Shown: positions 20,140 to 36,342, numbered from the stretch's first letter. The stretch: DNA of 64,000 bases from Pocillopora damicornis (GCF_003704095.1 NW_020843402.1:1054001-1118000); one strand, 5' to 3'. Numbers and translations are program-made. Notes: generated from the letters alone by a model not told the origin.

Positions 20140-21695
20140 ATGGTTATTTATTGTTTGATATTCTGGTTAAGTTAGGTTAATTTATTAATTCTAAGAGCAC
20201 TCAGTAAAGAGGGGCAAAAAAATCAAGGAAAGTGTGGTTTTAATTTTTCTTGTAAACTGGGTTGCCAACAGTTAATGCCTATTCTTACTGCTGTTCTAAA
20301 ACCTATGTAGTTATTGTACATGTAGTTATTGTACAGAATACAGGTGGAATAATGAATCTGTACAATCTTGAGTGACTTGTTTACTATAATTTCGGCAAAT
20401 GAATTTGATTGCACAAGTATTTTATGAGTTTCAAAGCAATCCATTTAATAAGTAGACTGAAAGTTTACTTTAAAAAATTGTAAATACTGATTTTATACAT
20501 TTGTAAAGAAGAGACTACCTGAATATGTTTGTTTTACTGAAAATAATTTTATCTTTTCAAAGTCATATTTAAAATTGTAACTGTTGACAAATAAGAGCAA
20601 ACAAACCTATGAACTAACTTAAATAAAGGTCAACCAACTTCAATGGAATCTCTCTTTTATTGCTAGTCGTAAGATAGTGACATGAATCTCTAGGTTAATC
20701 TCAAGCCATCCAATTTGTTTGGTGTTCAAGTGCCTGGCAAATGTCTTAATATCTTCTTTTTCTCATCAATGTTTACTCCAAATGGGGATTCTAAGCATAA
20801 CTGTTTTTGAGATGTAAATAGCAAGGGCAAGTTTAAAGTTCTCCATTCTTGGTGCTTATTGCACTGGTTTTAGAACGTGAAAATGATGACCTCACATTAG
20901 ATTTACAGGTGTCAAAGTGTACCAGGAGCAGTGTCCTAAGTCCTTATATGACTGCAAAGGATACCAACTGTACCCCTGAATTCATTTGTGAAGTAATGGA
21001 GTTATTTCCCCATGGGAATTGAAAATAAAATCAGAATATTCCTAAACACAAAGGCACGAAGACCAATTTGATACCAGAACTAGAAACTTATAGCTAAATG
21101 AAATGGTTATGTGGTCATGGTTAGTGTGATCAATGGGATATCACAGTTATCTGGGCAATGGGTCTATTTTACTCCTACACAGTCTACTTGTCTGATATCT
21201 TACTTGGACAAAGAGGCACAGCGTTAAGGTGAAAGAAGTTAACTACGTGCACAAGCCAATTACATTGAGACACTGCATCTGAGAAAACATGGGGCTCCCT
21301 CAGGCATGTAAAAGGATGCTGGAATGATGTCACTTATCAGGCTTAATCCACACCATTTAAGATAATTCTGACACTTCTTGAAAAGTTCAAGTCAAACCCA
21401 ACATTATACAGCAGAGTTAAACCATGAACTTGTATCAATAGGGTCTGAATGACAAACATTGAAAACATACAATATAAGTATCACTTTATTTAACAAACAT
21501 GCCAAAAGCCTTCTGTTGCAGTTCTAGAAAAATTTGGAAGATAACATCTGCAACTATCTTGAATGACCCAAGTAAGACCTATCCCTAAATTTACAGCAGC
21601 CAACACCAAGAATATAGAATTGTGAACAAGCTTGTCATTTTTTTTGACAAAGTCATCTACTGTCTATCCACTTTGAGGCAAGCCCACACTAGGTT

Positions 21696-23235
21696 TCAAC
21701 TCCCACGATAGGTTGAGTAAGAGAATGGACTGAGAAGAAGAGGAACATGATAATGCTGGGATGGGTCGCTGACAAGAAACACGATCTGAAAAAGAATAGT
21801 AACAAATTGACAATATTACACCACCATAGGACAAACTTGAGCAGATCATTTATTTGCTGAGGTTATTGATGCCTGTGATTTGAAATTAAACTTTTACTAA
21901 ATACTTGCTTTATTTTTAAAACACCCATAACAGACCAAACTGCTCTCCACTCAGTTCAACTACCATAATGATTATGAAGCTGAATGCAAGTCATTGTCTC
22001 ACAAGACACTGACATTCCTTGATATTTCAGGTAATTTTTCTGCATCAACTTAGGGAAGCAATTTGCCATGTTTGGTGGAAGAGCTTATGTACAACTAATA
22101 AGCAGAAATCTCTCTGCAGCACAACCAACTGAAACAGTATTTACTTCAGCAGACTCTCATTTTTTGGCAGTCATTTGCAGTTCATGTGGTGGGTTCTTGG
22201 CTAATGAATGGGGAGGAAAAATTACATCCAATAATAATAAGTATTTTTTAAATATGCAAACTTCCCCCCAAAAATCTTCCATTGGATTTTCCTCTACAAT
22301 TAGCTCTCCCACATCTTGCAAAAACACCCTTGCAGTCTGACCTGGAATCAAGTTAAGACTTTAAACTTGAAGTATGCTAGACCTTGTAACCTATCTCAGG
22401 TTGCTTTATGGGTTGTAACTATAGTACCTCTAGATAAAGGGAATAAGTATAGGTTGTGCAATGCCTTGAATCAGCGTTGATGTTAAATTTTTTAAATGAC
22501 TATATTTTAAACTTTCATTACCTCTACATATGGATAGAAAAATGAAGAAACCCCAATGTCCTTGAAGTATGCCTCTGTCTCAAATCTGATCATGTATTTG
22601 CCAGGTATAAACTGTTCTTGATTTAGTAAGTTGGCTACTCTACCATCAGCATTAGTTACCCTAAAAGAAATGGATGAAATAAAATAAAACATCCCAAGTT
22701 AGTTTACTTGCAAAATGGAAGTTAAAAAGAAAACAAAAAATGGTTCATAACTATTTCACTCACTTTAGGTATGTACAGCTATATCTTGATGGGTCTAATC
22801 TTTAGTTGATGTCTAAGAGTGCATTTTAATTGATTGTTGTAAAACCCAATCTAATTTAATACTAATTACAAGGTTAACCAGAACAAAAGAAAATAATAAA
22901 AAGTGCAATTGAAAACTCAAAGCAAAAACAAGCAAGTGTGCAAAAGACAAGTAACCAAGTGCTGATTAGACTTTGAGTTGTGCATCTGATGGCTGTGAGG
23001 GCAATGCAAGTTTCTAAAACAAAATCAATTTAATATTAGTTTCAGCTCTAAATTGAACAACTGAACTAAGTCTGTCCTACCCTGAGGCAATATGTTTCCA
23101 CATTCTACTGTCAGGACGCATTTCTTCAAAGTACAACTGAATCGGCAAGTTCTTAGCTGGTGAGCCTCTAGCTGTGTCCAGCACGTGAGTGGTCAGAGGA
23201 CTTCCAGTCATTGGACTACTATCACTGGTGGGATG
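21696..23235 (-). CDS. URAH: 5-hydroxyisourate hydrolase (transthyretin-related protein), three exons
   Basis: Exons 23235-23081, 22660-22522 and 21785-21696 give (HPTSDSSP)[19 protein letters not shown]...TNADGR...FFYPYVEIVF...[19 protein letters not shown]. The catalytic His/Arg/His and the C-terminal YRGS signature are intact. Confidence 0.95.
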
Positions 23236-23454
23236 CTGTCAGACACAGAAACAACCAGTCATCTACATATCACTTTCAAAATAGGTTGCAAGGAATTCAA
23301 GTAAAAAGTATGTGTAGCTAAGTCAAGGCCAGATTGAAAAAAAAAAAAAGCAACTTTGGGAAGCTAACTAATTTGGTCTTACCAACATGTTTAAAAAGTA
23401 CCCACATTTTAAATGTTAATATTCACTTTAAATTGCAATATGATTTTGGGGGAA

Positions 23455-23653
23455 AGATGTTTTTTGTCTTGTCATGAGTATGTGACAAAGAAAAAATTTT
23501 GAGTCCCCATGAGGAATTCAACCTCAGACCTTTGGATTTCATGCTTTGATGCTCTACCACTGAGCCACAAAGACTCTATGGTGAGCGAGGTCTTTTGTGA
23601 AGTTCATGACATGCATCCTACATACTGCTAGAATCATTAATGTCAATAGCATC
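23455..23653 (-). mobile_element. tRNA-derived SINE-like repeat
   Basis: Minus strand gtggctcagtggtagagcatc...ggttgaattcc (A and B boxes, 23568-23511). A homologous copy lies at 49425-49570. Confidence 0.7.
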
Positions 23654-23737
23654 ATTTTATTTGCATTTGTATGTTTGTGATTCTCACTTATGCTGCTGTT
23701 AACATAAAAGTATATGTTTTAAAGTTCAGAATACAAC

Positions 23738-26607
23738 TCAGAGACCCCCCTTTGTAAGGCTGTGGCTTAAGATATTACCCATTTGTAACCTTCCATACAC
23801 TGAAGTAAGAGCCCAGTAATGGTTTGTATTACTGACAGAGGAAGAGTGTCTTTTGTAGCCACTTACCCCCGTGACTGACAATGTTGATGATGAGGCCATT
23901 GCTGGCACAGTTTGACAATAAACAACTCTTGAATTTGCAAGCCCTGAGTGGTTACTTCCAGCACGGGTTACTGATCCATGAGATAAACTTAGAGAAGTCT
24001 TAAGTGATGGCTGGTGAGGATTGCGCAGGTTATTTTGGGAAGCTGCATGAAGCTGAGAAAATCTGTAAGCAACAAAAGGACTATGGAGACTTCTGTGACT
24101 GGATTGGTATGGAAGGCCAAGAACAGGTTCTGTTGGACTGGTTGGACTTCTATCTCTTTGCTTTTCACTATGATCAATCCCATTACTCTCCTGAGGAGAA
24201 CTTCTGGTCTTGCCACTGTGGTGTTGAGGATGAGAGTGATTGCCTGGAACCATAATCTTTGTGAGTTGAGCCTGTTCTCTATTGGACTCTGCATTAAATG
24301 GTGGGGTTCCTACAGTGGTTCTTGGGGATGTTGTCCCCTCTGAACTTGAGATATACTTTCCAGTAACAGGCACCATGGTTGGGCGTTCATCACAAGGATC
24401 TCTTGGGAGAATATGTTGAAATCTCTGGGAGCTGGGTATGGATACTAAAGTAGTGATGAGAGGGTAGTCTTCAACCAAGCTGTTGAGAATTGCCACATAA
24501 GTACCTCTGATACAATTATTTGTGTAAATCCTGGATAACCGTGCAAGCTTGGACATATTTGTCATCATCTCCCCCAAGGAATTATGCCCAACTGCGGCAT
24601 TTTCATACCAGATGGGGTCATCTTCGCAAGCATGATGTTTGAAGGATGCTTTGGGCCTTTGCCACAGGTACAAGTTCATCGGGTTCAGCTTCGACAAGTA
24701 CTTCAGAAATGACGCCACCGGACATCTCGGATTTCCTGAAGAAGGGTGTAGTAAAAGCAATATTTCTGTTTCCTTCATTTTAAACTCAATATATCAACAT
24801 ACAAGAAGTATTCTCCTAACAAGCACCTCCAAGAGTTTTGCATAATATCAGAGACAATACATATATTCTAGGTCTCATAAGCTTATGCTTCATTGTGTAA
24901 AATTATCAGTTGCATGAAAATCAGATGAAAAAGCACTCTACACTATGAAGGCCCAAAACCTTGATCACCAACTTGTGATTATGGATGACAGATTAAATAA
25001 CTCCAATTACCAGACACAAATCATGCTCCCTCACATCACAGTGTACCACTATTGAACAGCTTTCAAGGGATCTTTTTTAGAAGGGGGGGGAGGGTGGAGG
25101 GAAAAATCCACAGTACTTCGGTCACCGTTTACAAAACAACAAGGCTTTCTCTCTAATTCACCTAAACCCTTTGGCAAATTTGGTTTCTTCAAGCTTGTTT
25201 TGTATTTTATATTGTTACTATGTGTGTAGTGAATTTGAGTTTGAAGTGTTTTGAACTAGACTCAAAATCCTTTGAAAATATCAGACCATTCTTTTTGTCA
25301 GAACAAAACTTTCCTTATGCAACCCGACATAAATAGCCACAATTCCTTCCCTTTTTGCCTTTCACCAAACGGTGAAAAGCGTTTGGAGTCACAAAACTTT
25401 GACTAGTCAGGTATACCATTTTGGAGGTTAACTTTGTGTCACTTTCTCAGACGCAACCCAGTAAAATATAAAAGCTTACACAAACTTCACTTGGAGAGGC
25501 AAACGTCAATTAACGTGGAAAATTTCAATATAGATGTGTTTGAGAGAACTTGTTCTAACGGCAAGAAAAAACTTGTTTCAACGCCGAACTGCATTTAAAC
25601 ACTATTCGCATTAGAGATATTTGCTGGTAAAACTTCGCTTTTAAACAACAACCTTGTATGCTGTTAGGAAATTGTTGGCCTTGCAAGGCCATGCACTTTC
25701 TCTTCAAAATTTTTTTTACTGATATCGTTTTCAAGGTCCCACAACAAGATTTGCTTCGACCGACGAAAAGCTTTTATGAGGTTTTGAATACTCTCGCTTG
25801 TTTTCTGACAAAAAGCTTACCTGGTTTTTCATTCATTCGAGGACATTTTCCATCGGTAAAAACGTTTTCACAATGCGCCGGATTAGGATAAATATACTTC
25901 AAGCCAGTAGAAGAATCATAGCCCACGAGAAACGTGTCTCGGGTTTGTTCCCTGACGTTACTGCGATTCCGTTTTCCAGGCAAATACATCAGCAGATCAA
26001 AGAACACTTTCCTTTGCAAGCCATCGGCGCTGAATGGCGACAAGACATCACTTAGATAAAGTTTCTTTAAGTCATCTGGGCCAATGTCGGAACGATTTAC
26101 CTCGCCTTTGCCTTGCTTTTTAAGCTTCTCCACCTGCGCTTTAAAAATTTTGTTTGATTCGGTAAACTCGGGGTCGTTTTTTATGTCTATATTGCTCTGT
26201 TGTGACTGTAAGTACCGCAGGATACCAAACCGTATACTTCCCAGAGCAGAGGACTTGTAGTAATCGCCGTTCTTTTTGCGGGCTTCAACGTAAAATTTAC
26301 GCAAAAGATCATTCAACGCTGCCTTATCCAAGTTCTCGAAGTTCACATCCATACTTTTTTCCTCCATGTAGTCGCGGAGAATTTTCACAGCATTTTTTGT
26401 AGACCTCCATGTATTTTCACTGCAAGAGCGATGCTCCAACAATCTCTGAATGTCTTCCTCTGAACTTTCACCAAAACGCGGGAGCGAGTTTTCGTCTGTT
26501 GGACTTCCAACCGAGCTTTCTTCACTGTCACCGTTATTTTCGGCGTTTTCCATAGGTTCTACTTTCACTTCGGGAAGGAGAACAACTGAGCTTGTTTCTT
26601 CGTCCAT
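23738..26607 (-). CDS. Crypton/tyrosine-recombinase-derived (DUF3504-like; KCTD1/QRICH1/ZMYM-type) protein, 2 coding exons; 594 aa if it ends at TGA 23738, or spliced at 23867 into URAH
   Basis: Exons 26607-25821 and 24735-23738 (CCAG|gtaagc ... ttcag|GAAAT). SAM-like core-binding part NTWRSTKNAVKILRDY, LLRKFYVEARKKNGDYYKSSALGSIRFGILRYL. Catalytic-domain part LQRKVFFDLLMY, RCPVASFLKYLSKLNP, LWQRPK, WYENAAVGHNSLGEMM, YTNNCIR. The C-terminal part is Ser/Pro/His-rich low complexity. Confidence 0.85.
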
Positions 26608-26701
26608 TATCGCGCGGAGATTGAAGTTGTCGCGTATTCGCGCTGGTAAGACTTCAACACGATTTGATGCCGGGCAATATATAGTGATGTCACACACTCA
26701 C

Positions 26702-27139
26702 CAGAAAGCGTAGACACTTATGATGGTTATTTATAACGCACAAACCCCTATCCACCGCTATAACATGATTATCCACCAGAGAAAAAGATGCGGATGACTA
26801 AGGCAAACCTGAAACTGTTTTCCACCTTCATAACGGCAAAAACATTTTCCGATTCTTTGGCATGGTTTACTGTAAAGGTTTGGTAACAACTGGTCCAATA
26901 TAACTTAATCTTCATTCTTCACTTGAAGAGACTTATTTCTGTGGTGCCAAAAAGCTTGCATCATATACCTGCTCTTTTTTAAAGGTCGAGTGCAAAGTCA
27001 TCGATATTAGGCCCTTTCCGGAGAATATCTCCAGTATGGTTGACTTGTGATATCATCACTTGATGACCTCGAATAAAATTCGGTGTCAGTTCAAACGCAG
27101 ACACGGGTCTAAAAAAACCTTTTCCCTGGCAGCCATCTT
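26702..27139 (-). promoter_or_regulatory. Probable 5' exon(s)/TSS region of the Crypton-URAH locus
   Basis: YY1-like aagatggctgc (27139-27129), donor CAG|gtatat at 26968, acceptor tttcag at 26809 and donor CTG|gtgagt at 26701. Confidence 0.4.
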
Positions 27140-29849
27140 AACAGCTCTCTCTCACATCCAGACCATTATAACCAACGTTTTTAAAGACAATTGCGAGGTA
27201 ATTTTCCAAAAGATAACACTCAGTTAATATTGATTACTTTTCGTCATATCTATTATGACTCCAAGTTATATTACCACACAGAGAACTGTCGTATCATATC
27301 TTTATGTAATTAATCGAAAAATAGACAAGCGGCTATGAACAGTATGTTGACATGTATAACAATTAACAATATGGTTGAACTTTTTTTAAGAAAAGATATT
27401 GGCCACGCAAAAAGTAAACGTCAGTTTTCACAATTTGGACAATATATTAAACGAGACGCTCGAACAAAAACTAAAATTAAATAAAAATATAGTTTTCAAT
27501 AGCCCCCTTAAATGCCAGGCATACGTAAACAGTTGATTTCACGTCAAAACACGAAAGCTGTCAATCCTTAATATCTTTAAAGTTCAGTTTCCGCTTGATA
27601 CGACATGACACTTTTGCCAGCCATTCGACAAATACGGCTTTTTAACGTTCGGACAAGGGGAGGTCAAATAATACTATTGTCCAAAAAGCAATTACGGGCT
27701 AATACAGCGACGATGCGTTTCAGAGAAATATTACTTTCCGAGTGCACAGGTCAAGATATTGCCTTTAGAAAATGCTGCTATTTATAATAAAAATACAACT
27801 ATAAGAAAAAAGCTTGAAGCGTAACCGCATCAATGACGATTCCTCTTTCGATTCAACCGTACCAGTAGAATCAGTTCTGTATGTTTTAAATTTGCAAAGC
27901 ACCGTGACAGTGTAGATTTATATATGGGCAGTTGTTTCGAAACATTTACTGATCGCTCCGAGTGGTTTGTGCACGCCCTCGAAAAACGTTTTAAAATGAT
28001 GCCATAATGTAGGCGCCTACTTATTACAAACTAAATCCGATAAAAGCCAATACTGGAACAACGTTTTTAAATATCATTGCTTCATGCATAGAGTAAATTA
28101 TTCATGCATTTACCATATCACTCGTATATTTTTACTCCCGGCTAAAAACAGAGCTCCACAATATTTCCACAGAGACTGAAGATCTAGACATTGTGAACTC
28201 AATCGAGTGGAAATTATCAGTATTAGTTAAAAAAATGCTTTTTGTGGTATCATGTAAGATTACGTGTAAACCTTTTGAAATACCGTCATCCTATAGTTTG
28301 ACGAGTATATCATGAGTTTAAATCGTACCCGATGACTCTCAACAAAGAGTGGAGAAAGTTTTTTTTTTCTTTTAATACGGCAGGAGAAAAAAGTGTGGGT
28401 GTTTTTAATTTCTCTCTTTTTTTTCGGTCACCGATTATTTTGATGTTCGTGTTTTGCAATACTATAAATAGAATTTTACTAAATTAGATTGATTGATGTG
28501 GGCGATTTCATTTTCGCGGTTTTTAAGTAAAGCTTTCTAATGGGATCACATTGCACTCATAGTTACCTGGAATTGCAACAACCGGGAACAACTCTTCAGT
28601 TTGAAAGATAACCCTTAAAAAAGTGAGGTTCTTGAAAAGTTTCTGTCGTGTCACTTCTAATATCATGTTCTAGTGAAATGTTTTTACCAAAACTGCAGTG
28701 TAATGCAATTCCTCGAGTTAACTTAATTATCCTCGAGTCCAGTTTACTTTCTAAAAACATAGATACTATAGCAGTAATCTATGTTATCCCAACCGCAAGT
28801 ATTTACGTCCCTCTAAATTGAACTAATCTATCGACATAAAAAAAAGATAACATCACCGCTTTTTACCAACAAGAGCCCAATATAGAAAAATGAAGAAATT
28901 ATTCGGATGCTTACCAAATCGCCTTACGTTTTTGTTCCGCTATATATAGTTATTTCCTATTTCGCAGACTTGACTTTCGGAAACAAGCTTCTTCAACGCT
29001 GAGTGACCTCAAACGCCCAATAAACAGGAAAATTTCTCGCATATTTTTACTACACATTGACACAAATTGGTGAGAGCGCTGGGAGAGAAAAGTGTGTCTT
29101 GACGATTCAAATAATTCATAAAATAAAAGCATACTTGAAAAAAACAGTTCACGGCTGGTACGACAAAGCAATTCGTCTCGGCTACAACTCTGAGCATTTT
29201 AAAGCGAACTTTTTATGCATTCCGTTCGGAAAATCAAACAGTGGCAATCTACTTTCGCAGACAGATTTCCAACCACGCTTTCATAGGCTAAATTTATCAG
29301 AATTTTAGGTTCCACTTGGAAGCGCTACTCATATCTGCTTCTACAACACCAGTTGTGTTGCATAATCCGTCTAATGGAATATTCGAGATAGTTACGAAAG
29401 TCACGAACAACTTCTTCTTCTGACCTGATTGGAAGTTCTTCCCTCTACTTTTTGTACTTTCCTCAAAGATCGTGAAAAAGAATTTGGTGTTATACCAAAA
29501 TGAAACCCTCTAACTGATAGTTTGTCAATTCTAGTCATGTTTTTGCTGGATGTGTTGGTATTTAATGGAGAAGCTGCAAGTTTATCACCTTTTGCCTTTA
29601 CTGTCGAAAGGAGAAAATTATAGCATCTTGAGCATTTCATTTAAGCTCTATAAATCAGAATAATGTGCCGAGGAAAATCTGAGCAACTCGTGCTAAAAGA
29701 AAGCTGCAGTTTAGTTCAATATAAGGTTAGTTTCATTAGTAGCACTGCAGCACGAGGGGCCTGAAAGGGTCTAGCACTAGTGCCAGACCCCTTGCAGACC
29801 TCTTACCGCACACCTTGCTTCCAAAAGTGAGTGCCTGCTCACAGTCTAA

Positions 29850-30015
29850 TAGGCCATTTCCAAATTACCTTTGGCCCTTTTTTTTTCAAAACGAGGCCTA
29901 GTGCTCAAACCATTTGTTTGAAAATGAGATTGATTTACATGTGAATGAAAACTTGTTATCACATGGGAGGATAAGCACTAGGCATCACTTTGAAAGAGGC
30001 CATAGGTAATTTAGA
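29850..30015. repeat. Short imperfect-palindromic MITE-like repeat
   Basis: ccaaattacctttggcc..tttcaaa..agtgct at the left end pairs with agcact..ttgaaagaggccataggtaattt at the right end. Confidence 0.55.
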
Positions 30016-32305
30016 AAAGAGCTACTCTTGACTATTCTTTATTTACATAAATTTCAGCTTTCTTTTAGCTGAAAATGCCCAAAGTTTCCTCAGGACATTT
30101 TATCCTGAAACAATCACTTTAGATCATTTCACTCAACTCACATCAACCCTCTCTGGGTGAACTGAGCGATAAACATTTATTTCATTTATTTGTTATTCGT
30201 ACACAAGGGCATAGGCACTTTCAGGTTTAAATCCAAACTGTGGATGAATTAAACTACTTTAAAATGCCTTTCACTGTATTCACTGGAAAAGCAGTTGCAA
30301 ATCCTAGCTCCCTCAGCAGATAATTTGAATAGTTGGTCACATAATCTGAATGTGTGAGTGAGGAGAGTCAGGGGAAGATATATACATAGTCAAGCAACTT
30401 CACTCAAGTGACTTGACTCTGGTAATGACATCACATGATTCATTCCTGTTGTCAGAGTATCAGTAACTGTTTACCATTAAAGTCCTACTCAGAGCTACTC
30501 TCACTTGCTTGATCAGACAACACAACTTACTGTCACTGCTGACCTCAAAACCATTAACTGTGTGAAAAGAAATTACTCATTTTGGAGTAATTATATTTCT
30601 CTTCTAATAAAAACTTTTTCTTGCTTAGTTGCAAGTCGACCAGAGAACTATAGTGACTCTTTTGCAACCACACTGTACTTTACAGAGAAACTGGATAATA
30701 TCTAATTCAAATCCTACATTCATCTCAATGATAATCTAGTTGTGGTTAAGAAGGGAACATATTTAGATTTGTTGCCCCTCAGAAAGGCATATCATACCTG
30801 TGATCTGGCTCACGGAAAAAAGAAACAGGTTTAACCCATTAACCCAATTGACATCATGGCATTATATCACTCAGTTATAGCATAAGATTAACTTACATTA
30901 ACTTTAGCTCCAATCAATCCTTAAACCCCTGAGACTGACAAGTATCTAATTTCTCCCAACAGTATCCCCCCTGAATCTTAAATAAAGGAAATGATTGTGA
31001 GGTCAAGATACTCTGGATCATTAAGCAAATTCTCCTTGTGAGTAAATTTGTATAATAGGAAATGTACAGAGAGAAGTGTGGAGAACTTGGAAACTGATGT
31101 TAGGGTGCAAAGTGTTAACAGACAGATTTACCTAAATATCTAAATGAAGTTGTGTGTGTTTCGAAAGAGTAGTGAAAATTGCCCATGATGTAAGCTGGTG
31201 TTCAAGACAGAGAGATTGGCATGAAAATATAAAAGAAATGTATTTGTCCAGAATGGATAATGCAAACTGCCCATTAAACAGGCTTATATTCAAAACACTT
31301 GGGTTCTAATTTACAGCCATAGAATCATTTCCCTCTGTCTCTCAACCTTAAGTTTGAACGAGAGACAAGATTACACTTTGTAGATAAGGCACAATGCAGT
31401 GAAGTTATGGTGGATTTACCACTCTCTACAAGATATGGTACTACAGCACAACTGAAATTATCATATAATTTTAAGATTGGATGGACACGAACATTCCCCT
31501 CGGCATACCTTGAGTGTTTTACTAATCCCTCAGAAGATAGGAATAAGATGTAAATGACAGTTTTTTAAGTAGGAACGAAGGGGTAAGTGACTCGAGTACA
31601 TCACCTTTCAGATTTCAAATGAAACAAAAGGCTACATTTGAAAAGATATAATGGACAGCTGAACACTTTGTGTGGATTATCATGATTAAGCCTTTTTTTC
31701 GCTATTTCCACGAAACATTTGCGTAACAATGAGGAAAGTAAGAAGGAGACATTTTAAAACGGTCTGGACGTATGATGCAGAGGAGGGGAGGGGGAGCAGG
31801 GGCTTCCCTTGCACGGGCGAGTACGATCGCATGCACGGGACGACCCTGTTACAAAAGACCTCACCCAGCCGCTGATATTTTCCCCACAAAATCGTTTTCT
31901 CTTGCATTTTATTTTCACAAACCCCGTGTTAGGAATAGGTCATTGAAGCGTTTTCTACAATTGTGAGATATGTTGCTCATCTGATGCGTAAACTAACTGG
32001 TCTCTAGCGCATTAGTAACTTATGGCATACAGCGTAGTTGCATTTTAAAAGCCAAGTAGGAACAGTATGTAGTGCGCAGATCAACTAACCTTTTCTGGGC
32101 TTATGTGGTTCCGTATGCTATATAATCTTGCGTTACACTGCATAAGTGTCAATTGTCCACCACCAAACCACAAGATATCCGATCAATTATCCAGGAAACA
32201 AAAAGTTGTTTACGTGTCCCGCCTACAAGCCGAGACCGAACTCCAAGCTCAGAGAGCCAGCGACTATTTGGGTCTGAGGTTTTCTCGCTAAATTTAAAAT
32301 CCAAG

Positions 32306-35300
32306 ATGGCGACATCGAATGCAATGAAATCGTGCGCTACAAAATTGACCAAAGCAGAAAAAAAGGCCCTAAGAAAGCAAACGAGACTAATTAATAGTCT
32401 TCGCAGAAATAATGCCGATCTTGCAACAGTTTCAGAATTGCCCACTCGTCATCTGATGGTTGGAAATGGAGGGTTCATGTGTGGCATAGACCGAAGGCAA
32501 ATTTTCAGTTTGTTCCAGAAGTTTGGAAACATAGAACGGCTTCTAATGTTCCCTGGTAGATCCTTCTCGTTTATCACCTTTGAGCATGTCAGTGAATCAG
32601 TTAAGGCAATGGAAAAAGTGCACGGGCGAGTTTTAGACTGTCCTTCGGAGTTTCCGAGACCCGACGTTAGATTTTACTTGTCTTTTCTCACGAACGTACC
32701 CGATAATGTTTCCTTTGAAAAACAGGCCACACCATCAGGTCTTGTGTTAGTGGATGATTTTGTGACGGAGGTAGAAGAGGCGCAGTTAATTCAAGCGTTA
32801 GGATGGAGAAGTGGAGGGAGGGAGAATGAAATTCAAGGCACAGGTAGTTATGGTTTGATCAAGTTCACTAGCACCCTTTTATATTTCTGGGTGTAAGACG
32901 GCGCTGTGAGAATTTTTTTCGAAAGATATGACTCTGACCCCGGTTAGAGCTCAAGTCCTTACCTTCTAATGAATAGTCCACTCTATCAGGCCACAGCTTA
33001 CCAACCCTCACTGATGGGGAAGGATAAAAACATACATCATATAAAATATTCCTACATATGTGTAGTTTACCTTCTCCACCTGTCCCTTTCTGTGCACCAA
33101 ATTGGATGATAGCATCATAAGTTATGAAGAACTATCCCAGATTAGAAGCAAACTGTTTGTAATAAGATGTGATTGTTTAGTGCTTTTTCCATAGACACCT
33201 TTTGATGTTGATATGATTTACTTGTTCCCTTTTTGCTATTAGTACTGTTTGTGAAGAGACTGGCTTTATTTGTTTAAGTAGAAGTTTATAATTCTGCATT
33301 CTGAATGAGTTATACTAACTGCACATTTTTTTTTTGTGGGGACCAAATCAGTTGCAGATAGGATTGCCTGTATAGTCATAACCTTTCTTCTTCCTTCACA
33401 GCAAACCAACAACTTCGTCACAGAAGAGTCAAACATTTTGGGTATGAGTTCCTGTATGGATCAAGTAATGTCGACAAATCAAATCCTTTACCTGACGGAA
33501 TTCCTAGTGTTTGTGATGAACTGTTGGATCGTGTTCAGGAGAAAGTTATTTGGAAACCAGATCAAATGACAGTTAATGAATACAAACCTGGCCATGGTAT
33601 TCCACCTCACATTGACACTCACTCAGCTTTTGAGGATGGAATAGTTTCACTCAGCCTTGGATCACAGGTATTTGTTTGATAGCAGGTTTTCAATAAGATG
33701 GTTTGCAATAAGAGGCATGGCTCCTAATAGTTAATCTCTATGTTAATCATTTCTTTTTTCCAACCTTGTTTCCAGGCTGTCTCTTCTTCTTTGCCCCCAA
33801 CCCCTCTCCCCTTAGGAATGAGGTTGTTGGTGGAGAAAGGATAGTGCAATAGTGTGAGTGCATGTCCTCTGACATTGTGGCCTGGGTTCTATTTCAAGGC
33901 CAAACATCACATGGGGGTAGTTTATTGTTTTTTTCCTATTCTTGCTGCAAGGATACTCGACATACTAATTCAACCTGGTCAGCACTTGATGAGGGGTTAC
34001 CCTATTAGAGCTCCATGGCTAAATCCATTTGTTTGTTACATTTCATATTTGAATTTCTAAAATTTTGTGTACTCAAAATCCTGATTTGACTCGGAAGCAT
34101 TGAATACAAAGCCACCCCATGAAAGTTTTTGGGTAAAAGTTTGGGGTATTTTATTTCAAATAATTTTTTTCAGGTCACAATGGAATTTCGTCATCCGGAT
34201 GGTAGACACGTATCAGTTGTTTTGCCGAGGAGGAGTTTACTTATAATGACTGGTGAAAGCAGATATCTTTGGAGTCATGGGTAAGATTTGAATGGATTAC
34301 TTTTTAATCAGGGAAAGGAAAGAACCAGAAGTAATACAAAGTCGATTGCAATTGAGTTCGTGATTTCGCTATGTCTAATTCGCGTCAATCTTCGGTATTC
34401 TTAGCCATCCGCTGTCTTTTTGGCTAACTCTTGCCATTTCTATATTCTCTCTCTTACCAGACCAATACTTAGTGGTTTCCTTCACGCTGGCGCTAATTTT
34501 TCTCGCGTCGGCACACGACTCAAAGATGTAGCGTAGTTCTGTTACAGAAGGGGAAAATCAAGGAAGAACGTGCATATCTTTCATCTGAACTTGGAGTACA
34601 CCTAGATGAAATTGCCTTCCATTTTTTAAAAACTTTGTGAAATAAAGTAAAATTCTAATCTTAACCCGTTTTTCTTTTACTTCTCATCATATGTTCGTAA
34701 CTTTTGCGAACTATATTTTCTTATCTTCAAATTGCAGTATAACGCCACGAAAATACGATATCATACATGATGTTAAAAGCACGTCAAACGAGGGGACTGG
34801 TTACGAAGAAAATTCCAAGAAACCTGAAACAAATAGCGCACAGGGCACCTCCAATATAACAGCCGAAGAGGGAATGACTCTGTTTGAAAGAGAAACAAGG
34901 ATATCACTGACACTCCGCAAAGTCCGTCAAACTCCATGTAACTGCGCCTTCCCAGCTCAGTGTGATTCGCAAACTGGAAACAAGACTTCAGCTGCAATCC
35001 CGCCTTCGTCCGATGTTCCAACAACGATTGGAGAAGCGCAAAAGCTGGAAAAGCTGCACGTGCATGAAGTGTACGAGAAGATTGCGCCACATTTCAGTGG
35101 AACACGGCACAGCCCTTGGCCAAAAGTGGCTGAGTTTCTGCGAAATCAACCAGTCGGGAGTCTGGTAGCTGATGTAGGATGTGGAAACGGCAAATATCTC
35201 GGGATCAATGATAATCTATTCAAAACAGGTTCTGATAGAAGTTTCAACCTGGCTTCCATCTGCCGGGAGCGGGGACATTCTGTGATTGTGTGTGATATCT

Positions 35301-36342
35301 TGTCATTGCCATACAGGTAAAGAGAGCAGCCAAAGTATAATCATTAATATCATTAAAATAATTTTAATGTATTTCCACATGTAACCTGGGACTGCACTGG
35401 TTGTGAATCTGCGCGCCTTGTAATTGGCTTTCAAGAAACTTGCGTCACCAATCAAAAATGCAAAACCAAAACCGATCCTATAATAGTCACATGTGTTTTC
35501 GCGCGCTTTAGTTCTCATCACTTCTTGTGTTCTACAGTGATCTGATTGGCCAGTGTGTTTACTTTGAATTTGGTAATACTGAGTATTCAAATGGTTGGAA
35601 AGGTGTTCACGTAGTGTTTGTCTCGTTACTTTTTGTCGTTGACAGAGATAAACTTGTCGTTAGCGAGGGAACAGGCCAAGGGATTTAAAAGTCGTGAAAC
35701 TGAATTTCGTCGTTTTTGCTTTCGTCTTTCAGGTCTGATGTGTTTGATGTAACTCTCTGCATCGCAGTTCTTCACCACCTCGCTACGGCCGAGCGACGTC
35801 TGGAAGGTCTGAAGGAACTGGTGCGAATAACACGTCCAGGGGGACTGGTGCTCGTTTACGTATGGGCTTTAGAACAGGAAGTGAAAAAGGTTAAAAAGAA
35901 ACAGCTAAAGGAAGTGGAATTCAGGGAACGTAATGATCACCACACCGGACCGGAAGACGTAAGCAACAAAAACGAGACTTCGGAAAAGAGCAAAGCGGTC
36001 GGAAACTTCTCCGCAAATAACGAACCATTCCCAAATAAATCCAAACCTTTAGATGATAATTGTTCCACAAGATTGATGGTTAATGCTAGTCGGGAATCTT
36101 TTGAGCAACAAGATTTGTTTGTGCCGTGGAAATACAGCGGCTCTGGAAAACAACACGAGAAACAGGAAAAAGACACTGAAGAGTCAGGGGAAGGCACAGA
36201 TGGTCACGTGTACCACAGGTATTATCACGTGTTTCAAGATGGCGAGCTCCGAGAACTTTGTAGCCGCCTCAGTAACGTGACAGTGGAGGAGCATTATTAC
36301 GACAGAGGGAATTGGTGCGTGGTACTCAGGAAAAAGAAATAA
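32306..36342 (+). CDS. ALKBH8: ALKBH8 tRNA wobble-uridine methyltransferase/hydroxylase (RRM + AlkB + Zn motif + Trm9-like MTase), 5 exons, 699 aa
   Basis: Exons 32306-32843, 33402-33667, 34174-34280, 34738-35316 and 35733-36342 are in frame. Motifs: LMVGNGG (RRM), [80 protein letters not shown]. Confidence 0.95.

Follow-up and report, generated by a model that had tools for sequence, protein, structure and literature searches.

Which protein, or proteins, does the 5-hydroxyisourate hydrolase (HIUase; gene URAH) locus of the coral Pocillopora damicornis encode? The locus lies in a 64,000-nucleotide stretch of the genome (GCF_003704095.1, NW_020843402.1:1054001-1118000), referred to here as the window, whose positions are counted from its first letter. 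A gene of the DUF3504 type, related to the recombinases of Crypton transposons, is found in the window on the same strand as the HIUase exons and upstream of them, and an earlier reading made from the bare DNA (the sequence-only reading) had proposed that the two are spliced in frame into one protein of 679 residues. We find that this one locus encodes both an HIUase that begins with a peroxisomal targeting signal type 2 (PTS2)-like peptide and a protein in which a dead recombinase and a long linker precede an HIUase without PTS2. As a whole, we favour the reading, with a probability of about 0.6, of a compound URAH locus with two promoters and two proteins, where the fusion is most likely a tetrameric nuclear co-regulator.

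One locus, two HIUase-containing products

All five exons of the fusion lie on the minus strand. Exon 1 (25821-26607) encodes an acidic N-terminus with a VVLLP-VKVE motif, a QRICH1-type domain that is recombinase core-binding-like and the first half of a dead catalytic domain with its box I arginine. Exon 2 (23867-24735) holds the remainder of the catalytic domain and then an open, predicted disordered linker of about 200 residues that runs up to the donor ACGGGG/gtaagt, the last exon base being 23867. The acceptor ctgacag/CAT, with 23235 as the first exon base, opens URAH exon 2 (23081-23235), which is common to both isoforms and starts the HIUase domain; donor and acceptor are canonical and in phase 0, and the acceptor is used by the PTS2 exon and by the second DUF3504 exon alike. 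URAH exon 3 (22522-22660) encodes the middle of the domain, and the last coding exon (21696-21785) ends in YRGS and a stop, its 3' untranslated region (UTR) continuing below 21400. The pieces add up to 787 + 869 + 155 + 139 + 90 = 2040 nt, that is, 679 codons and a stop, and each is open in the frame that its phase requires. The exons, phases and frame put forward by the sequence-only reading are therefore confirmed, and the window exons are 99-100% identical, with the same exon joints, to a 679-residue 'uncharacterized protein' of Pocillopora verrucosa (RefSeq XP_058948757.2).

Evidence from RNA was drawn from assembled Logan contigs of four runs (X1, X5, X6 and X9) from four studies, placed on positions 21400-27000 of the window. 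The proposed joint, 23235->23867, is seen in all four, with exactly 23236-23866 skipped, a 631-nt intron bounded by GT..AG on the minus strand. A single 2356-nt contig of X6 comprises fusion exon 1, fusion exon 2 and URAH exon 2, and a single 1282-nt contig of X9 runs from fusion exon 2 through the three URAH exons into 3' UTR. Each of them bridges the joint with 156 nt on the shorter side. Contig depth within the intron (bin 23644-23830) is 0-4.4 as against 30-135 for fusion exon 2 across the four runs, so the RNA of the nested gene is almost always spliced onward. Signs of a product that retains this intron, or is polyadenylated inside it, were weak. The intron between the two fusion exons (24736-25820; 1085 nt, phase 1), whose position is kept in Nematostella according to the exon boundaries there, is likewise removed in every run (joint 24734/5->25820/1). 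Since the fusion junction was predicted blind and then found both in RNA and in orthologues, it is far beyond chance.

The other product begins far upstream. In X1 and X5, contigs at the URAH acceptor 23235 carry loose ends of 114-161 nt that are absent from 21400-27000, and the 30-nt consensus of those ends matches the window exactly once, at 32092-32121. The canonical first exon located in this way (32090-32252, minus strand, the 5' limit of ~32252 being a minimum given by contig span) has an ATG at 32143, 18 codons (32143-32090) in frame into URAH exon 2 and a phase-0 donor, AAAAG/gttagt, at 32090/32089. It lies 8.9 kb upstream of the acceptor, and URAH intron 1 (23236-32089, minus strand; 8854 nt from the PTS2 exon to the 23235 joint) contains the nested DUF3504 gene on the same strand. 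With this first exon, both the open frame that precedes the internal methionine of URAH exon 2 and the phase-0 acceptor are accounted for. In X1 the contig of the shared exon has approximately twice the depth of the fusion-joint contig, a rough figure taken from contig depths. The sequence-only reading had seen little room for a separate HIUase promoter, and indeed none lies in the 631-nt gap; the enzyme nevertheless has its own promoter and first exon, 8.9 kb away.

The 18 codons encode a PTS2-like nonapeptide, RLYSIRNHI (R-L-x5-H-I). The strict PTS2 nonapeptide reads R-[LVIQ]-x-x-[LVIHQ]-[LSGAK]-x-[HQ]-[LAF]; R, L, I and H of the coral peptide fit it, and positions 6 (R) and 9 (I) are off this consensus. 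Metazoan HIUases generally carry a PTS2 (PMC4324301, PMC8919083), and zebrafish Uraha, with a putative PTS2, may still not reach peroxisomes (PMC8919083). The canonical isoform is presumably an ordinary peroxisomal HIUase.

The nested gene consists of two exons, without a terminal exon of its own, and it appears to have its own start region. This is because RNA contigs over its 5' UTR and putative internal promoter (26608-26970, minus strand, delimited from contig ends and sequence) stop at 26941-26969 in two of the runs and extend beyond 27000 in the remaining two, while no joint or loose contig end in the Logan contigs of the four runs ties this region to the PTS2 exon. The motif TATAAATA is located at 26735-26728 (minus strand), ~125 nt upstream of the fusion ATG; contigs nevertheless extend to 26941-27000 or further, through sequence with several upstream ATGs, and the nested gene may have two start regions.

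Some further observations concern the transcripts. The exon 1 contig (25821-26607) is at most about half as deep as the exon 2 contig (23867-24735) in three of the four runs; contig depths are unreliable, and the gap could reflect a bias of poly(A) libraries towards 3' ends or additional starts within the nested gene. X1 alone shows a cryptic exon in the last URAH intron (joints 21785->22096 and 22323->22375), and X5 alone a joint 24747->25821 with end letters GT..AC, unlike the minus-strand GT..AG of the main joints. Contigs with the last URAH exon run 1.1-1.8 kb past 21400, representing either a long 3' UTR or an overlap with a neighbouring transcript.

The 631-nt intron also holds a SINE-like repeat (short interspersed element; ~23440-23620, ~170 nt), which the sequence-only reading had taken to fill much of the gap. 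The repeat is there, however it occupies only ~28% of the intron. At least 1254 first-look candidates for copies are present in the genome at 81-95% identity (mostly 83-89%), and its very high RNA depth, up to ~1200, presumably comes from copies in other transcripts. ARAGORN found no tRNA in the repeat (23440-23620), and therefore only its copy number and RNA depth stand behind the label 'SINE'.

A search of the genome (234,350,878 bases in 4393 contigs) returned this HIUase locus only. The recombinase-derived exon is likewise single copy, the next paralogue being at most 39% identical. OHCU decarboxylase was found at two loci elsewhere (C1689:316016-316477 and C3164:73751-74149), along with one weak match to a uricase exon (C1291:547928-548059), so that the remainder of the pathway from urate to allantoin seems to be in place.

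The recombinase-derived and HIUase parts of the fusion

For full-length comparisons we used database proteins (P0151, which is near-identical to the fusion, and its orthologues), and the exons of the window were searched one by one. In Pfam, exon 1 is assigned to the QRICH1 domain and the opening of exon 2 to the final part of DUF3504, with scores that in each case fall just short of the cut-off; the QRICH1 domain just reaches it in the related proteins P0165, P0174 and P0171, and PF12012 matches are on record for the anemone orthologues. Exon 1 has 3061 relatives at E <= 0.001, including many Crypton-like proteins that pass the Pfam Phage_integrase and DUF3504 models. One of these, P0007, passes both cut-offs and is matched by exon 1 at E = 1.2e-38. 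Alignment with such integrase-positive paralogues shows that the fused proteins keep the box I arginine, have lost the GH motif and carry an invariant isoleucine (Ile371) in place of the tyrosine nucleophile. The box II histidine is asparagine in corals, and the arginine that follows it is kept in corals and is lysine in anemones. With the tyrosine nucleophile replaced by isoleucine and the box II histidine lost, the alignment indicates that the protein cannot be an active recombinase. An active tyrosine recombinase or Crypton transposon was considered as a candidate for this element and was excluded, as the R-H-R-Y tetrad is incomplete and has no tyrosine nucleophile.

Considered together, these comparisons identify the N-terminal part as a domesticated Crypton-derived DUF3504 gene. 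It behaves as a host gene, being single copy, syntenic in four other genomes, under purifying selection and interrupted by an intron at a position shared with Nematostella. That such a gene is spliced in frame onto intact HIUase exons ending in YRGS, as the sequence-only reading had it, is borne out by Pfam, alignment and RNA.

The AlphaFold model, built on a 78-sequence alignment, has a confident fold at residues 45-350, a disordered stretch at 354-549 with predicted local distance difference test (pLDDT) values below 50, and a confident HIUase domain; the disordered linker of about 200 residues anticipated from the DNA thus recurs in the model. In a search against representatives of the PDB, the best structural match to the N-terminal fold is QRICH1 in Zincore (9hjt_H; Z 13.3, root-mean-square deviation (rmsd) 14.4, 246 aligned residues, 18% identity), pairing model residues 65-342 with QRICH1 471-770. 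It is followed by Cre (1kbu; model residues 53-383, Z 11.4, rmsd 7.4, 265 aligned), by XerA, XerH and XerD at Z 9.6-10.3, and by integron and transposon integrases. The high rmsd arises because the two lobes are hinged. These recombinase and QRICH1 matches were obtained only in the all-against-all structural search, profile search and Foldseek being swamped by transthyretins. By these matches, the N-terminal part has a tyrosine-recombinase fold that is nearest to QRICH1.

Ahead of this fold, the motif VVLLP-x-VK[VI]E is invariant, and V14-K15-x-E17 is the same in all seven orthologues, so that the VKVE motif noticed in the DNA is present and conserved. It would fit a SUMO consensus following a hydrophobic core that resembles a SUMO-interacting motif.

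At the other end, URAH exons, numbered 3-5 in the fusion, score 26.6, 36.8 and 45.3 bits against Pfam PF00576 (cut-off 25.3), and P0151 scores 127 bits over profile positions 1-109. Foldseek superposes the modelled domain on zebrafish HIUase (2h1x and 2h6u) with template modelling (TM) scores of ~0.91-0.92 (target-normalised) and rmsd of 1.7-2.0 (VIA Z 15.9-18.3). H569, D609-G610-R611, H661, H663 and Y676-R677-G678-S679 are invariant in the seven orthologues and constitute an HIUase-type signature, not that of the hormone carrier; these are the residues that we take to be the catalytic ones of the HIUase family. HIUases are homotetramers throughout the family. Because the C-terminal YRGS is free, the fusion may keep enzyme or ligand-binding activity.

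Two other groups of long HIUase-containing proteins were encountered (among P0183-P0187 and P0201/P0206). Coelacanth, axolotl and echidna have cadherin-1 models that include an HIUase domain and are likely read-through of neighbouring genes, and ant HIUase proteins of 556-560 residues have long, unexplained extensions.

Conservation, selection and competing explanations

Fused protein models were found in at least eight named hexacoral species, with lengths of 586-698 residues, most of them named 'uncharacterized'. Searching with the HIUase part among long proteins, together with a profile search, gave Acropora muricata (683 residues), Montipora foliosa (685), Actinostola sp. (619), Actinia tenebrosa (586, automatically named 'TTL-like', i.e. 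transthyretin-like) and Nematostella vectensis (LOC5504541, 591), all of them with DUF3504 or QRICH1 as well as Transthyretin domains. Cluster look-ups added Porites lutea and Porites evermanni (693-698) and a 690-residue protein from a Joint Genome Institute (JGI) metatranscriptome contig of another coral. The sequence-only reading had pointed to predicted proteomes as the place where DUF3504 and Transthyretin domains might co-occur, and there they do. No octocoral or medusozoan fused protein turned up in the HIUase-part and profile searches, which cannot show absence.

In a maximum-likelihood tree of the recombinase-derived region with 78 family members, no QRICH1 among them, seven fused proteins form one group (Shimodaira-Hasegawa-like approximate likelihood ratio test (SH-aLRT) support 92) within which corals (100) and anemones (99) each make up a clade of their own. 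Branches among the corals are shorter than those of the Crypton-like paralogues by a factor of 10-100.

The genomic setting is conserved too. In the window, the first coding exon of an ALKBH8-like gene, with its RRM domain (32306-32896, plus strand), stands head-to-head with the PTS2 exon of URAH, and methyltransferase exons of the ALKBH8-like gene follow at 35716-36342 (plus strand). As the two ATGs are only 163 nt apart in this head-to-head arrangement, the promoter they share is probably bidirectional. We compared the window with a coral locus (L009/L010) and with those of Porites lutea (L017), Actinia tenebrosa (L018) and Nematostella (L016). The order is the same in L009, L016, L017 and L018, namely ALKBH8 on the opposite strand, an open reading frame (ORF) for a PTS2-like peptide beside its 5' end, the two recombinase-derived exons and the URAH exons. 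The candidate peptides are RLSSIRNHI in L009/L010 and in Porites, RLAKISSHL in Actinia (a full fit to R-L-x5-H-L) and RTEKFSQHL in Nematostella; each ORF ends in a phase-0 donor, the PTS2 exons outside Pocillopora being predicted from sequence. In the Nematostella locus the strict PTS2 pattern found nothing upstream, and the relaxed pattern with a donor requirement gave one candidate exon, adjoining ALKBH8. The persistence of the ALKBH8/URAH pairing in Porites, Actinia, Nematostella and another coral suggests an old bidirectional promoter.

The adjacency, donor and phase that might be expected in relatives are indeed kept: the fusion intron has canonical splice sites in phase 0, at donor and acceptor alike, in the window, L009 and L016, and the intron between exons 1 and 2 has the same position in all three. 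A cnidarian sequence in a metagenome of the European Nucleotide Archive (L012:4079-5600) likewise has a DUF3504 gene directly upstream of URAH exons, at 57-61% identity; an N gap and GT-rich simple repeats interrupt exon 2 of this sequence. These comparisons indicate that the fusion has been kept since before corals and anemones separated.

Selection at the codon level differs greatly along the fusion. Synonymous sites are saturated between the window and L009 (dS 0.9-4.4), and the ratio of nonsynonymous to synonymous substitution rates (dN/dS) ranges from 0.012 in exon 1 and 0.021 in the folded portion of exon 2, through 0.04-0.06 in the URAH exons, to 0.49 in the linker. The recombinase-derived region is 94% identical between Pocillopora and Acropora over 326 columns, and these values point to strong purifying selection on it. 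The linker, of ~180-230 codons, is poorly conserved and variable in length, yet it is open and in frame in seven of seven aligned orthologues; a random 180-codon stretch would escape stops in about 2 of 10,000 cases.

How, then, might such a locus work? A distal promoter, head-to-head with ALKBH8, would drive the PTS2-like exon, which is spliced over the 8.9-kb intron to give the ordinary HIUase. From within that intron, the phase-0 donor of the nested gene's exon 2 would be joined to the phase-0 acceptor of URAH exon 2, giving the 679-residue protein with its acidic N-terminus and SUMO site, dead-recombinase fold, disordered linker of ~200 residues and HIUase lacking the PTS2. We infer that this protein is made. 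Its HIUase domain would tetramerise it, as HIUases do, and thereby hold four recombinase-like modules, able to bind DNA or protein, on flexible tethers of 200 residues. A partner at the N-terminus would be compatible with such a tetramer and would leave YRGS free, as in allantoin synthase (5z5m; PMC13751858). It would be expected to act outside peroxisomes, most likely in the nucleus, as a multivalent co-regulator that binds DNA or zinc-finger factors, in the manner of DUF3504 proteins that are paired with an oligomeric module. It might also co-assemble with the PTS2 isoform.

Several points weigh against this reading. The fusion is known here from sequence and from RNA contigs, which are assemblies and not raw or long reads; they establish that the joined form exists, and not its exact abundance, its 5' end, full-length molecules or the isoform ratios. 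In X1 and X5 the contigs extend only 29 nt past the joint, short of the 31-nt bridging rule, which fits a branch of the assembly graph between the two isoforms. Should transcripts begin at 26941 or farther upstream, several upstream ATGs in their 5' UTR could damp translation. Conservation of the HIUase exons is uninformative about the fusion, since the canonical isoform constrains those exons anyway. The DUF3504 and QRICH1 scores of P0151 (23.6 and 26.4 bits) are both below the curated cut-offs, and a single-sequence search with exon 1 (phmmer) against solved structures gave no QRICH1 match, only noise.

Among the alternatives, a relocalised enzyme is unlikely. The fusion would then serve HIUase catalysis in the cytosol or nucleus, with the dead recombinase acting only as an anchor, regulator or stabiliser. 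It omits the PTS2 exon while retaining every HIUase exon and the free YRGS, and it comes from the sole HIUase locus of a genome in which OHCU decarboxylase and the weak uricase match suggest that the pathway exists; in plants, moreover, cytosolic and peroxisomal HIUase-containing isoforms arise from one gene (PMC4324301). A relocalised enzyme, however, needs no N-terminal partner of 550 residues, for skipping the PTS2 exon would suffice, and no part of the protein is more strongly conserved than the recombinase-derived domain (dN/dS 0.01-0.02), which points to this domain having a function of its own.

It is rather improbable that the nested gene simply borrows the terminal exons and poly(A) site of URAH, with the HIUase tail tolerated as a passenger. 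Such piggy-backing would agree with a nested gene that lacks its own terminal exon and has nearly all its RNA spliced onward. An intron-retaining, DUF3504-only ORF exists in another species (P0171, 571 residues), and in the window a retained 631-nt intron would bring a stop at 23738 and an AATAAA ~80 nt downstream. With an irrelevant tail, however, a stop in the linker would have been neutral, and yet the linker has remained free of stops, between two phase-0 splice sites, from anemones to corals despite saturated synonymous sites. That a poorly conserved linker stays open and in frame in all seven orthologues is our main argument that the HIUase tail is wanted on the fusion protein.

The two remaining explanations are poorly compatible with the data. 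It is very unlikely that the internal promoter serves chiefly to tune URAH by promoter competition or transcriptional interference while yielding little protein; two promoters do feed one set of exons, and a long 5' UTR with upstream ATGs is possible, but this leaves unexplained the purifying selection at the codon level on 370 N-terminal codons and the orthologues kept since the coral-anemone split. An artefact (chimeric assembly, a read-through gene model or genomic DNA contaminating the RNA libraries) is barely credible, for although the contigs are assemblies and automatic annotation does produce read-through chimeras such as the cadherin-1/HIUase models, the joint removes an exact GT..AG intron in frame, recurs in four independent studies and is found again in genomes whose sequencing and annotation were independent, as well as in the JGI metatranscriptome contig of another species.

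Known systems and biological meaning

Genes with DUF3504 that were domesticated from Cryptons include the long isoform of KCTD1, KIAA1958, ZMYM2-4, QRICH1 and WOC (Kojima and Jurka 2011, PMC3212892). The fusion resembles them in its broken catalytic tetrad with the tyrosine lost, in being single copy, conserved and intron-bearing, and in being joined to an unrelated module. In KCTD1 a C-terminal BTB oligomerisation domain stands where the fusion carries HIUase. The KCTD1 layout of DUF3504 and BTB recurs in an amphioxus protein of 686 residues (P0084; XP_078579137.1), again with BTB in the HIUase position. Outside the cnidarians, no family member lies closer to the fused clade in our tree than this protein, although its branch is long and its placement unsure. 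Unlike other DUF3504 genes, the fusion has a metabolic enzyme as its partner, shares exons with a stand-alone isoform and keeps, in corals, the second arginine of the tetrad. Its lineage is also cnidarian, whereas the 2011 survey put WOC/ZMYM/QRICH1 in bilaterians only (PMC3212892).

A second parallel is offered by the best structural match. In Zincore (9hjt), to go by the entry title, QRICH1 reportedly sits with SEPHS1 on the zinc-finger factor ZFP91 and DNA. There, as here, a DUF3504 protein is paired with a protein of an enzyme family; the partners are however separate chains in Zincore and one polypeptide in the fusion, and at 14.4 A rmsd and 18% identity the likeness is one of fold only. 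The complex is due to Bianchi et al. (Science 2025), as cited in PMC13538652. A more far-reaching version of our reading would see in the fusion a covalent DUF3504-enzyme partnership, as in Zincore, kept by hexacorals since before corals and anemones split, with the ligand pocket of the HIUase letting urate or 5-hydroxyisourate act on gene regulation, and with mixed tetramers, formed with the PTS2 isoform through the shared interface, partitioning the protein between peroxisome and nucleus; this we regard as a doubtful, speculative extension.

Allantoin synthase and the plant transthyretin-like protein (5z5m; PMC13751858, PMC4324301) are similar in having an N-terminal partner on a C-terminal HIUase, a free YRGS and a tetrameric core, and in Arabidopsis several isoforms with different localisation come from one such HIUase-fusion gene (PMC4324301). 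The partner in those proteins, however, is OHCU decarboxylase, the next enzyme of the pathway, and the cnidarian fusion has no OHCU decarboxylase domain. The automatic name 'TTL-like' given to the Actinia protein is hence wrong, as its partner is a dead recombinase.

Exon-capture fusion is known from SETMAR. In bird ATF7IP, a Crypton-derived recombinase sequence is located in an intron (PMC3212892) and, as in the present case, splicing would link it to exons of the host gene; the fusion transcript was only predicted there and is seen in RNA here. In the coral locus the captured ORF has the host exons on its downstream side, not upstream, and the arrangement is older than the separation of corals and anemones.

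The sequence-only reading knew of no such fusion. No paper linking DUF3504 or Crypton to HIUase, or naming LOC5504541 or the Pocillopora accession, was found in the searchable literature; a 2026 review of urate-catabolism gene fusions includes no cnidarian and only Urah-Urad fusions, and no such gene is among those given in the 2011 survey of domesticated Cryptons (PMC3212892). Models of the fusion are nevertheless already in the databases, as unnamed or mis-named predictions from the hexacorals listed above. What seems to be new is the partnership of DUF3504 with HIUase, and the shared-exon architecture is unusual. The fusion is not tied to symbiosis, since Nematostella, which is non-symbiotic, has it.

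For the small set of Crypton-domesticated genes, the locus adds a cnidarian member older than the coral-anemone split, with a urate enzyme as a new kind of partner. It is also a clean natural case of a nested gene captured by host exons and kept in frame across deep time. The parallels with KCTD1/BTB and QRICH1/SEPHS1 suggest a general rule, whereby dead recombinase domains act as multimers on a separate oligomeric module. For corals and anemones themselves, it means that the URAH locus yields two very different proteins, and coral 'URAH' read counts therefore sum a presumably peroxisomal enzyme and a probable nuclear protein.

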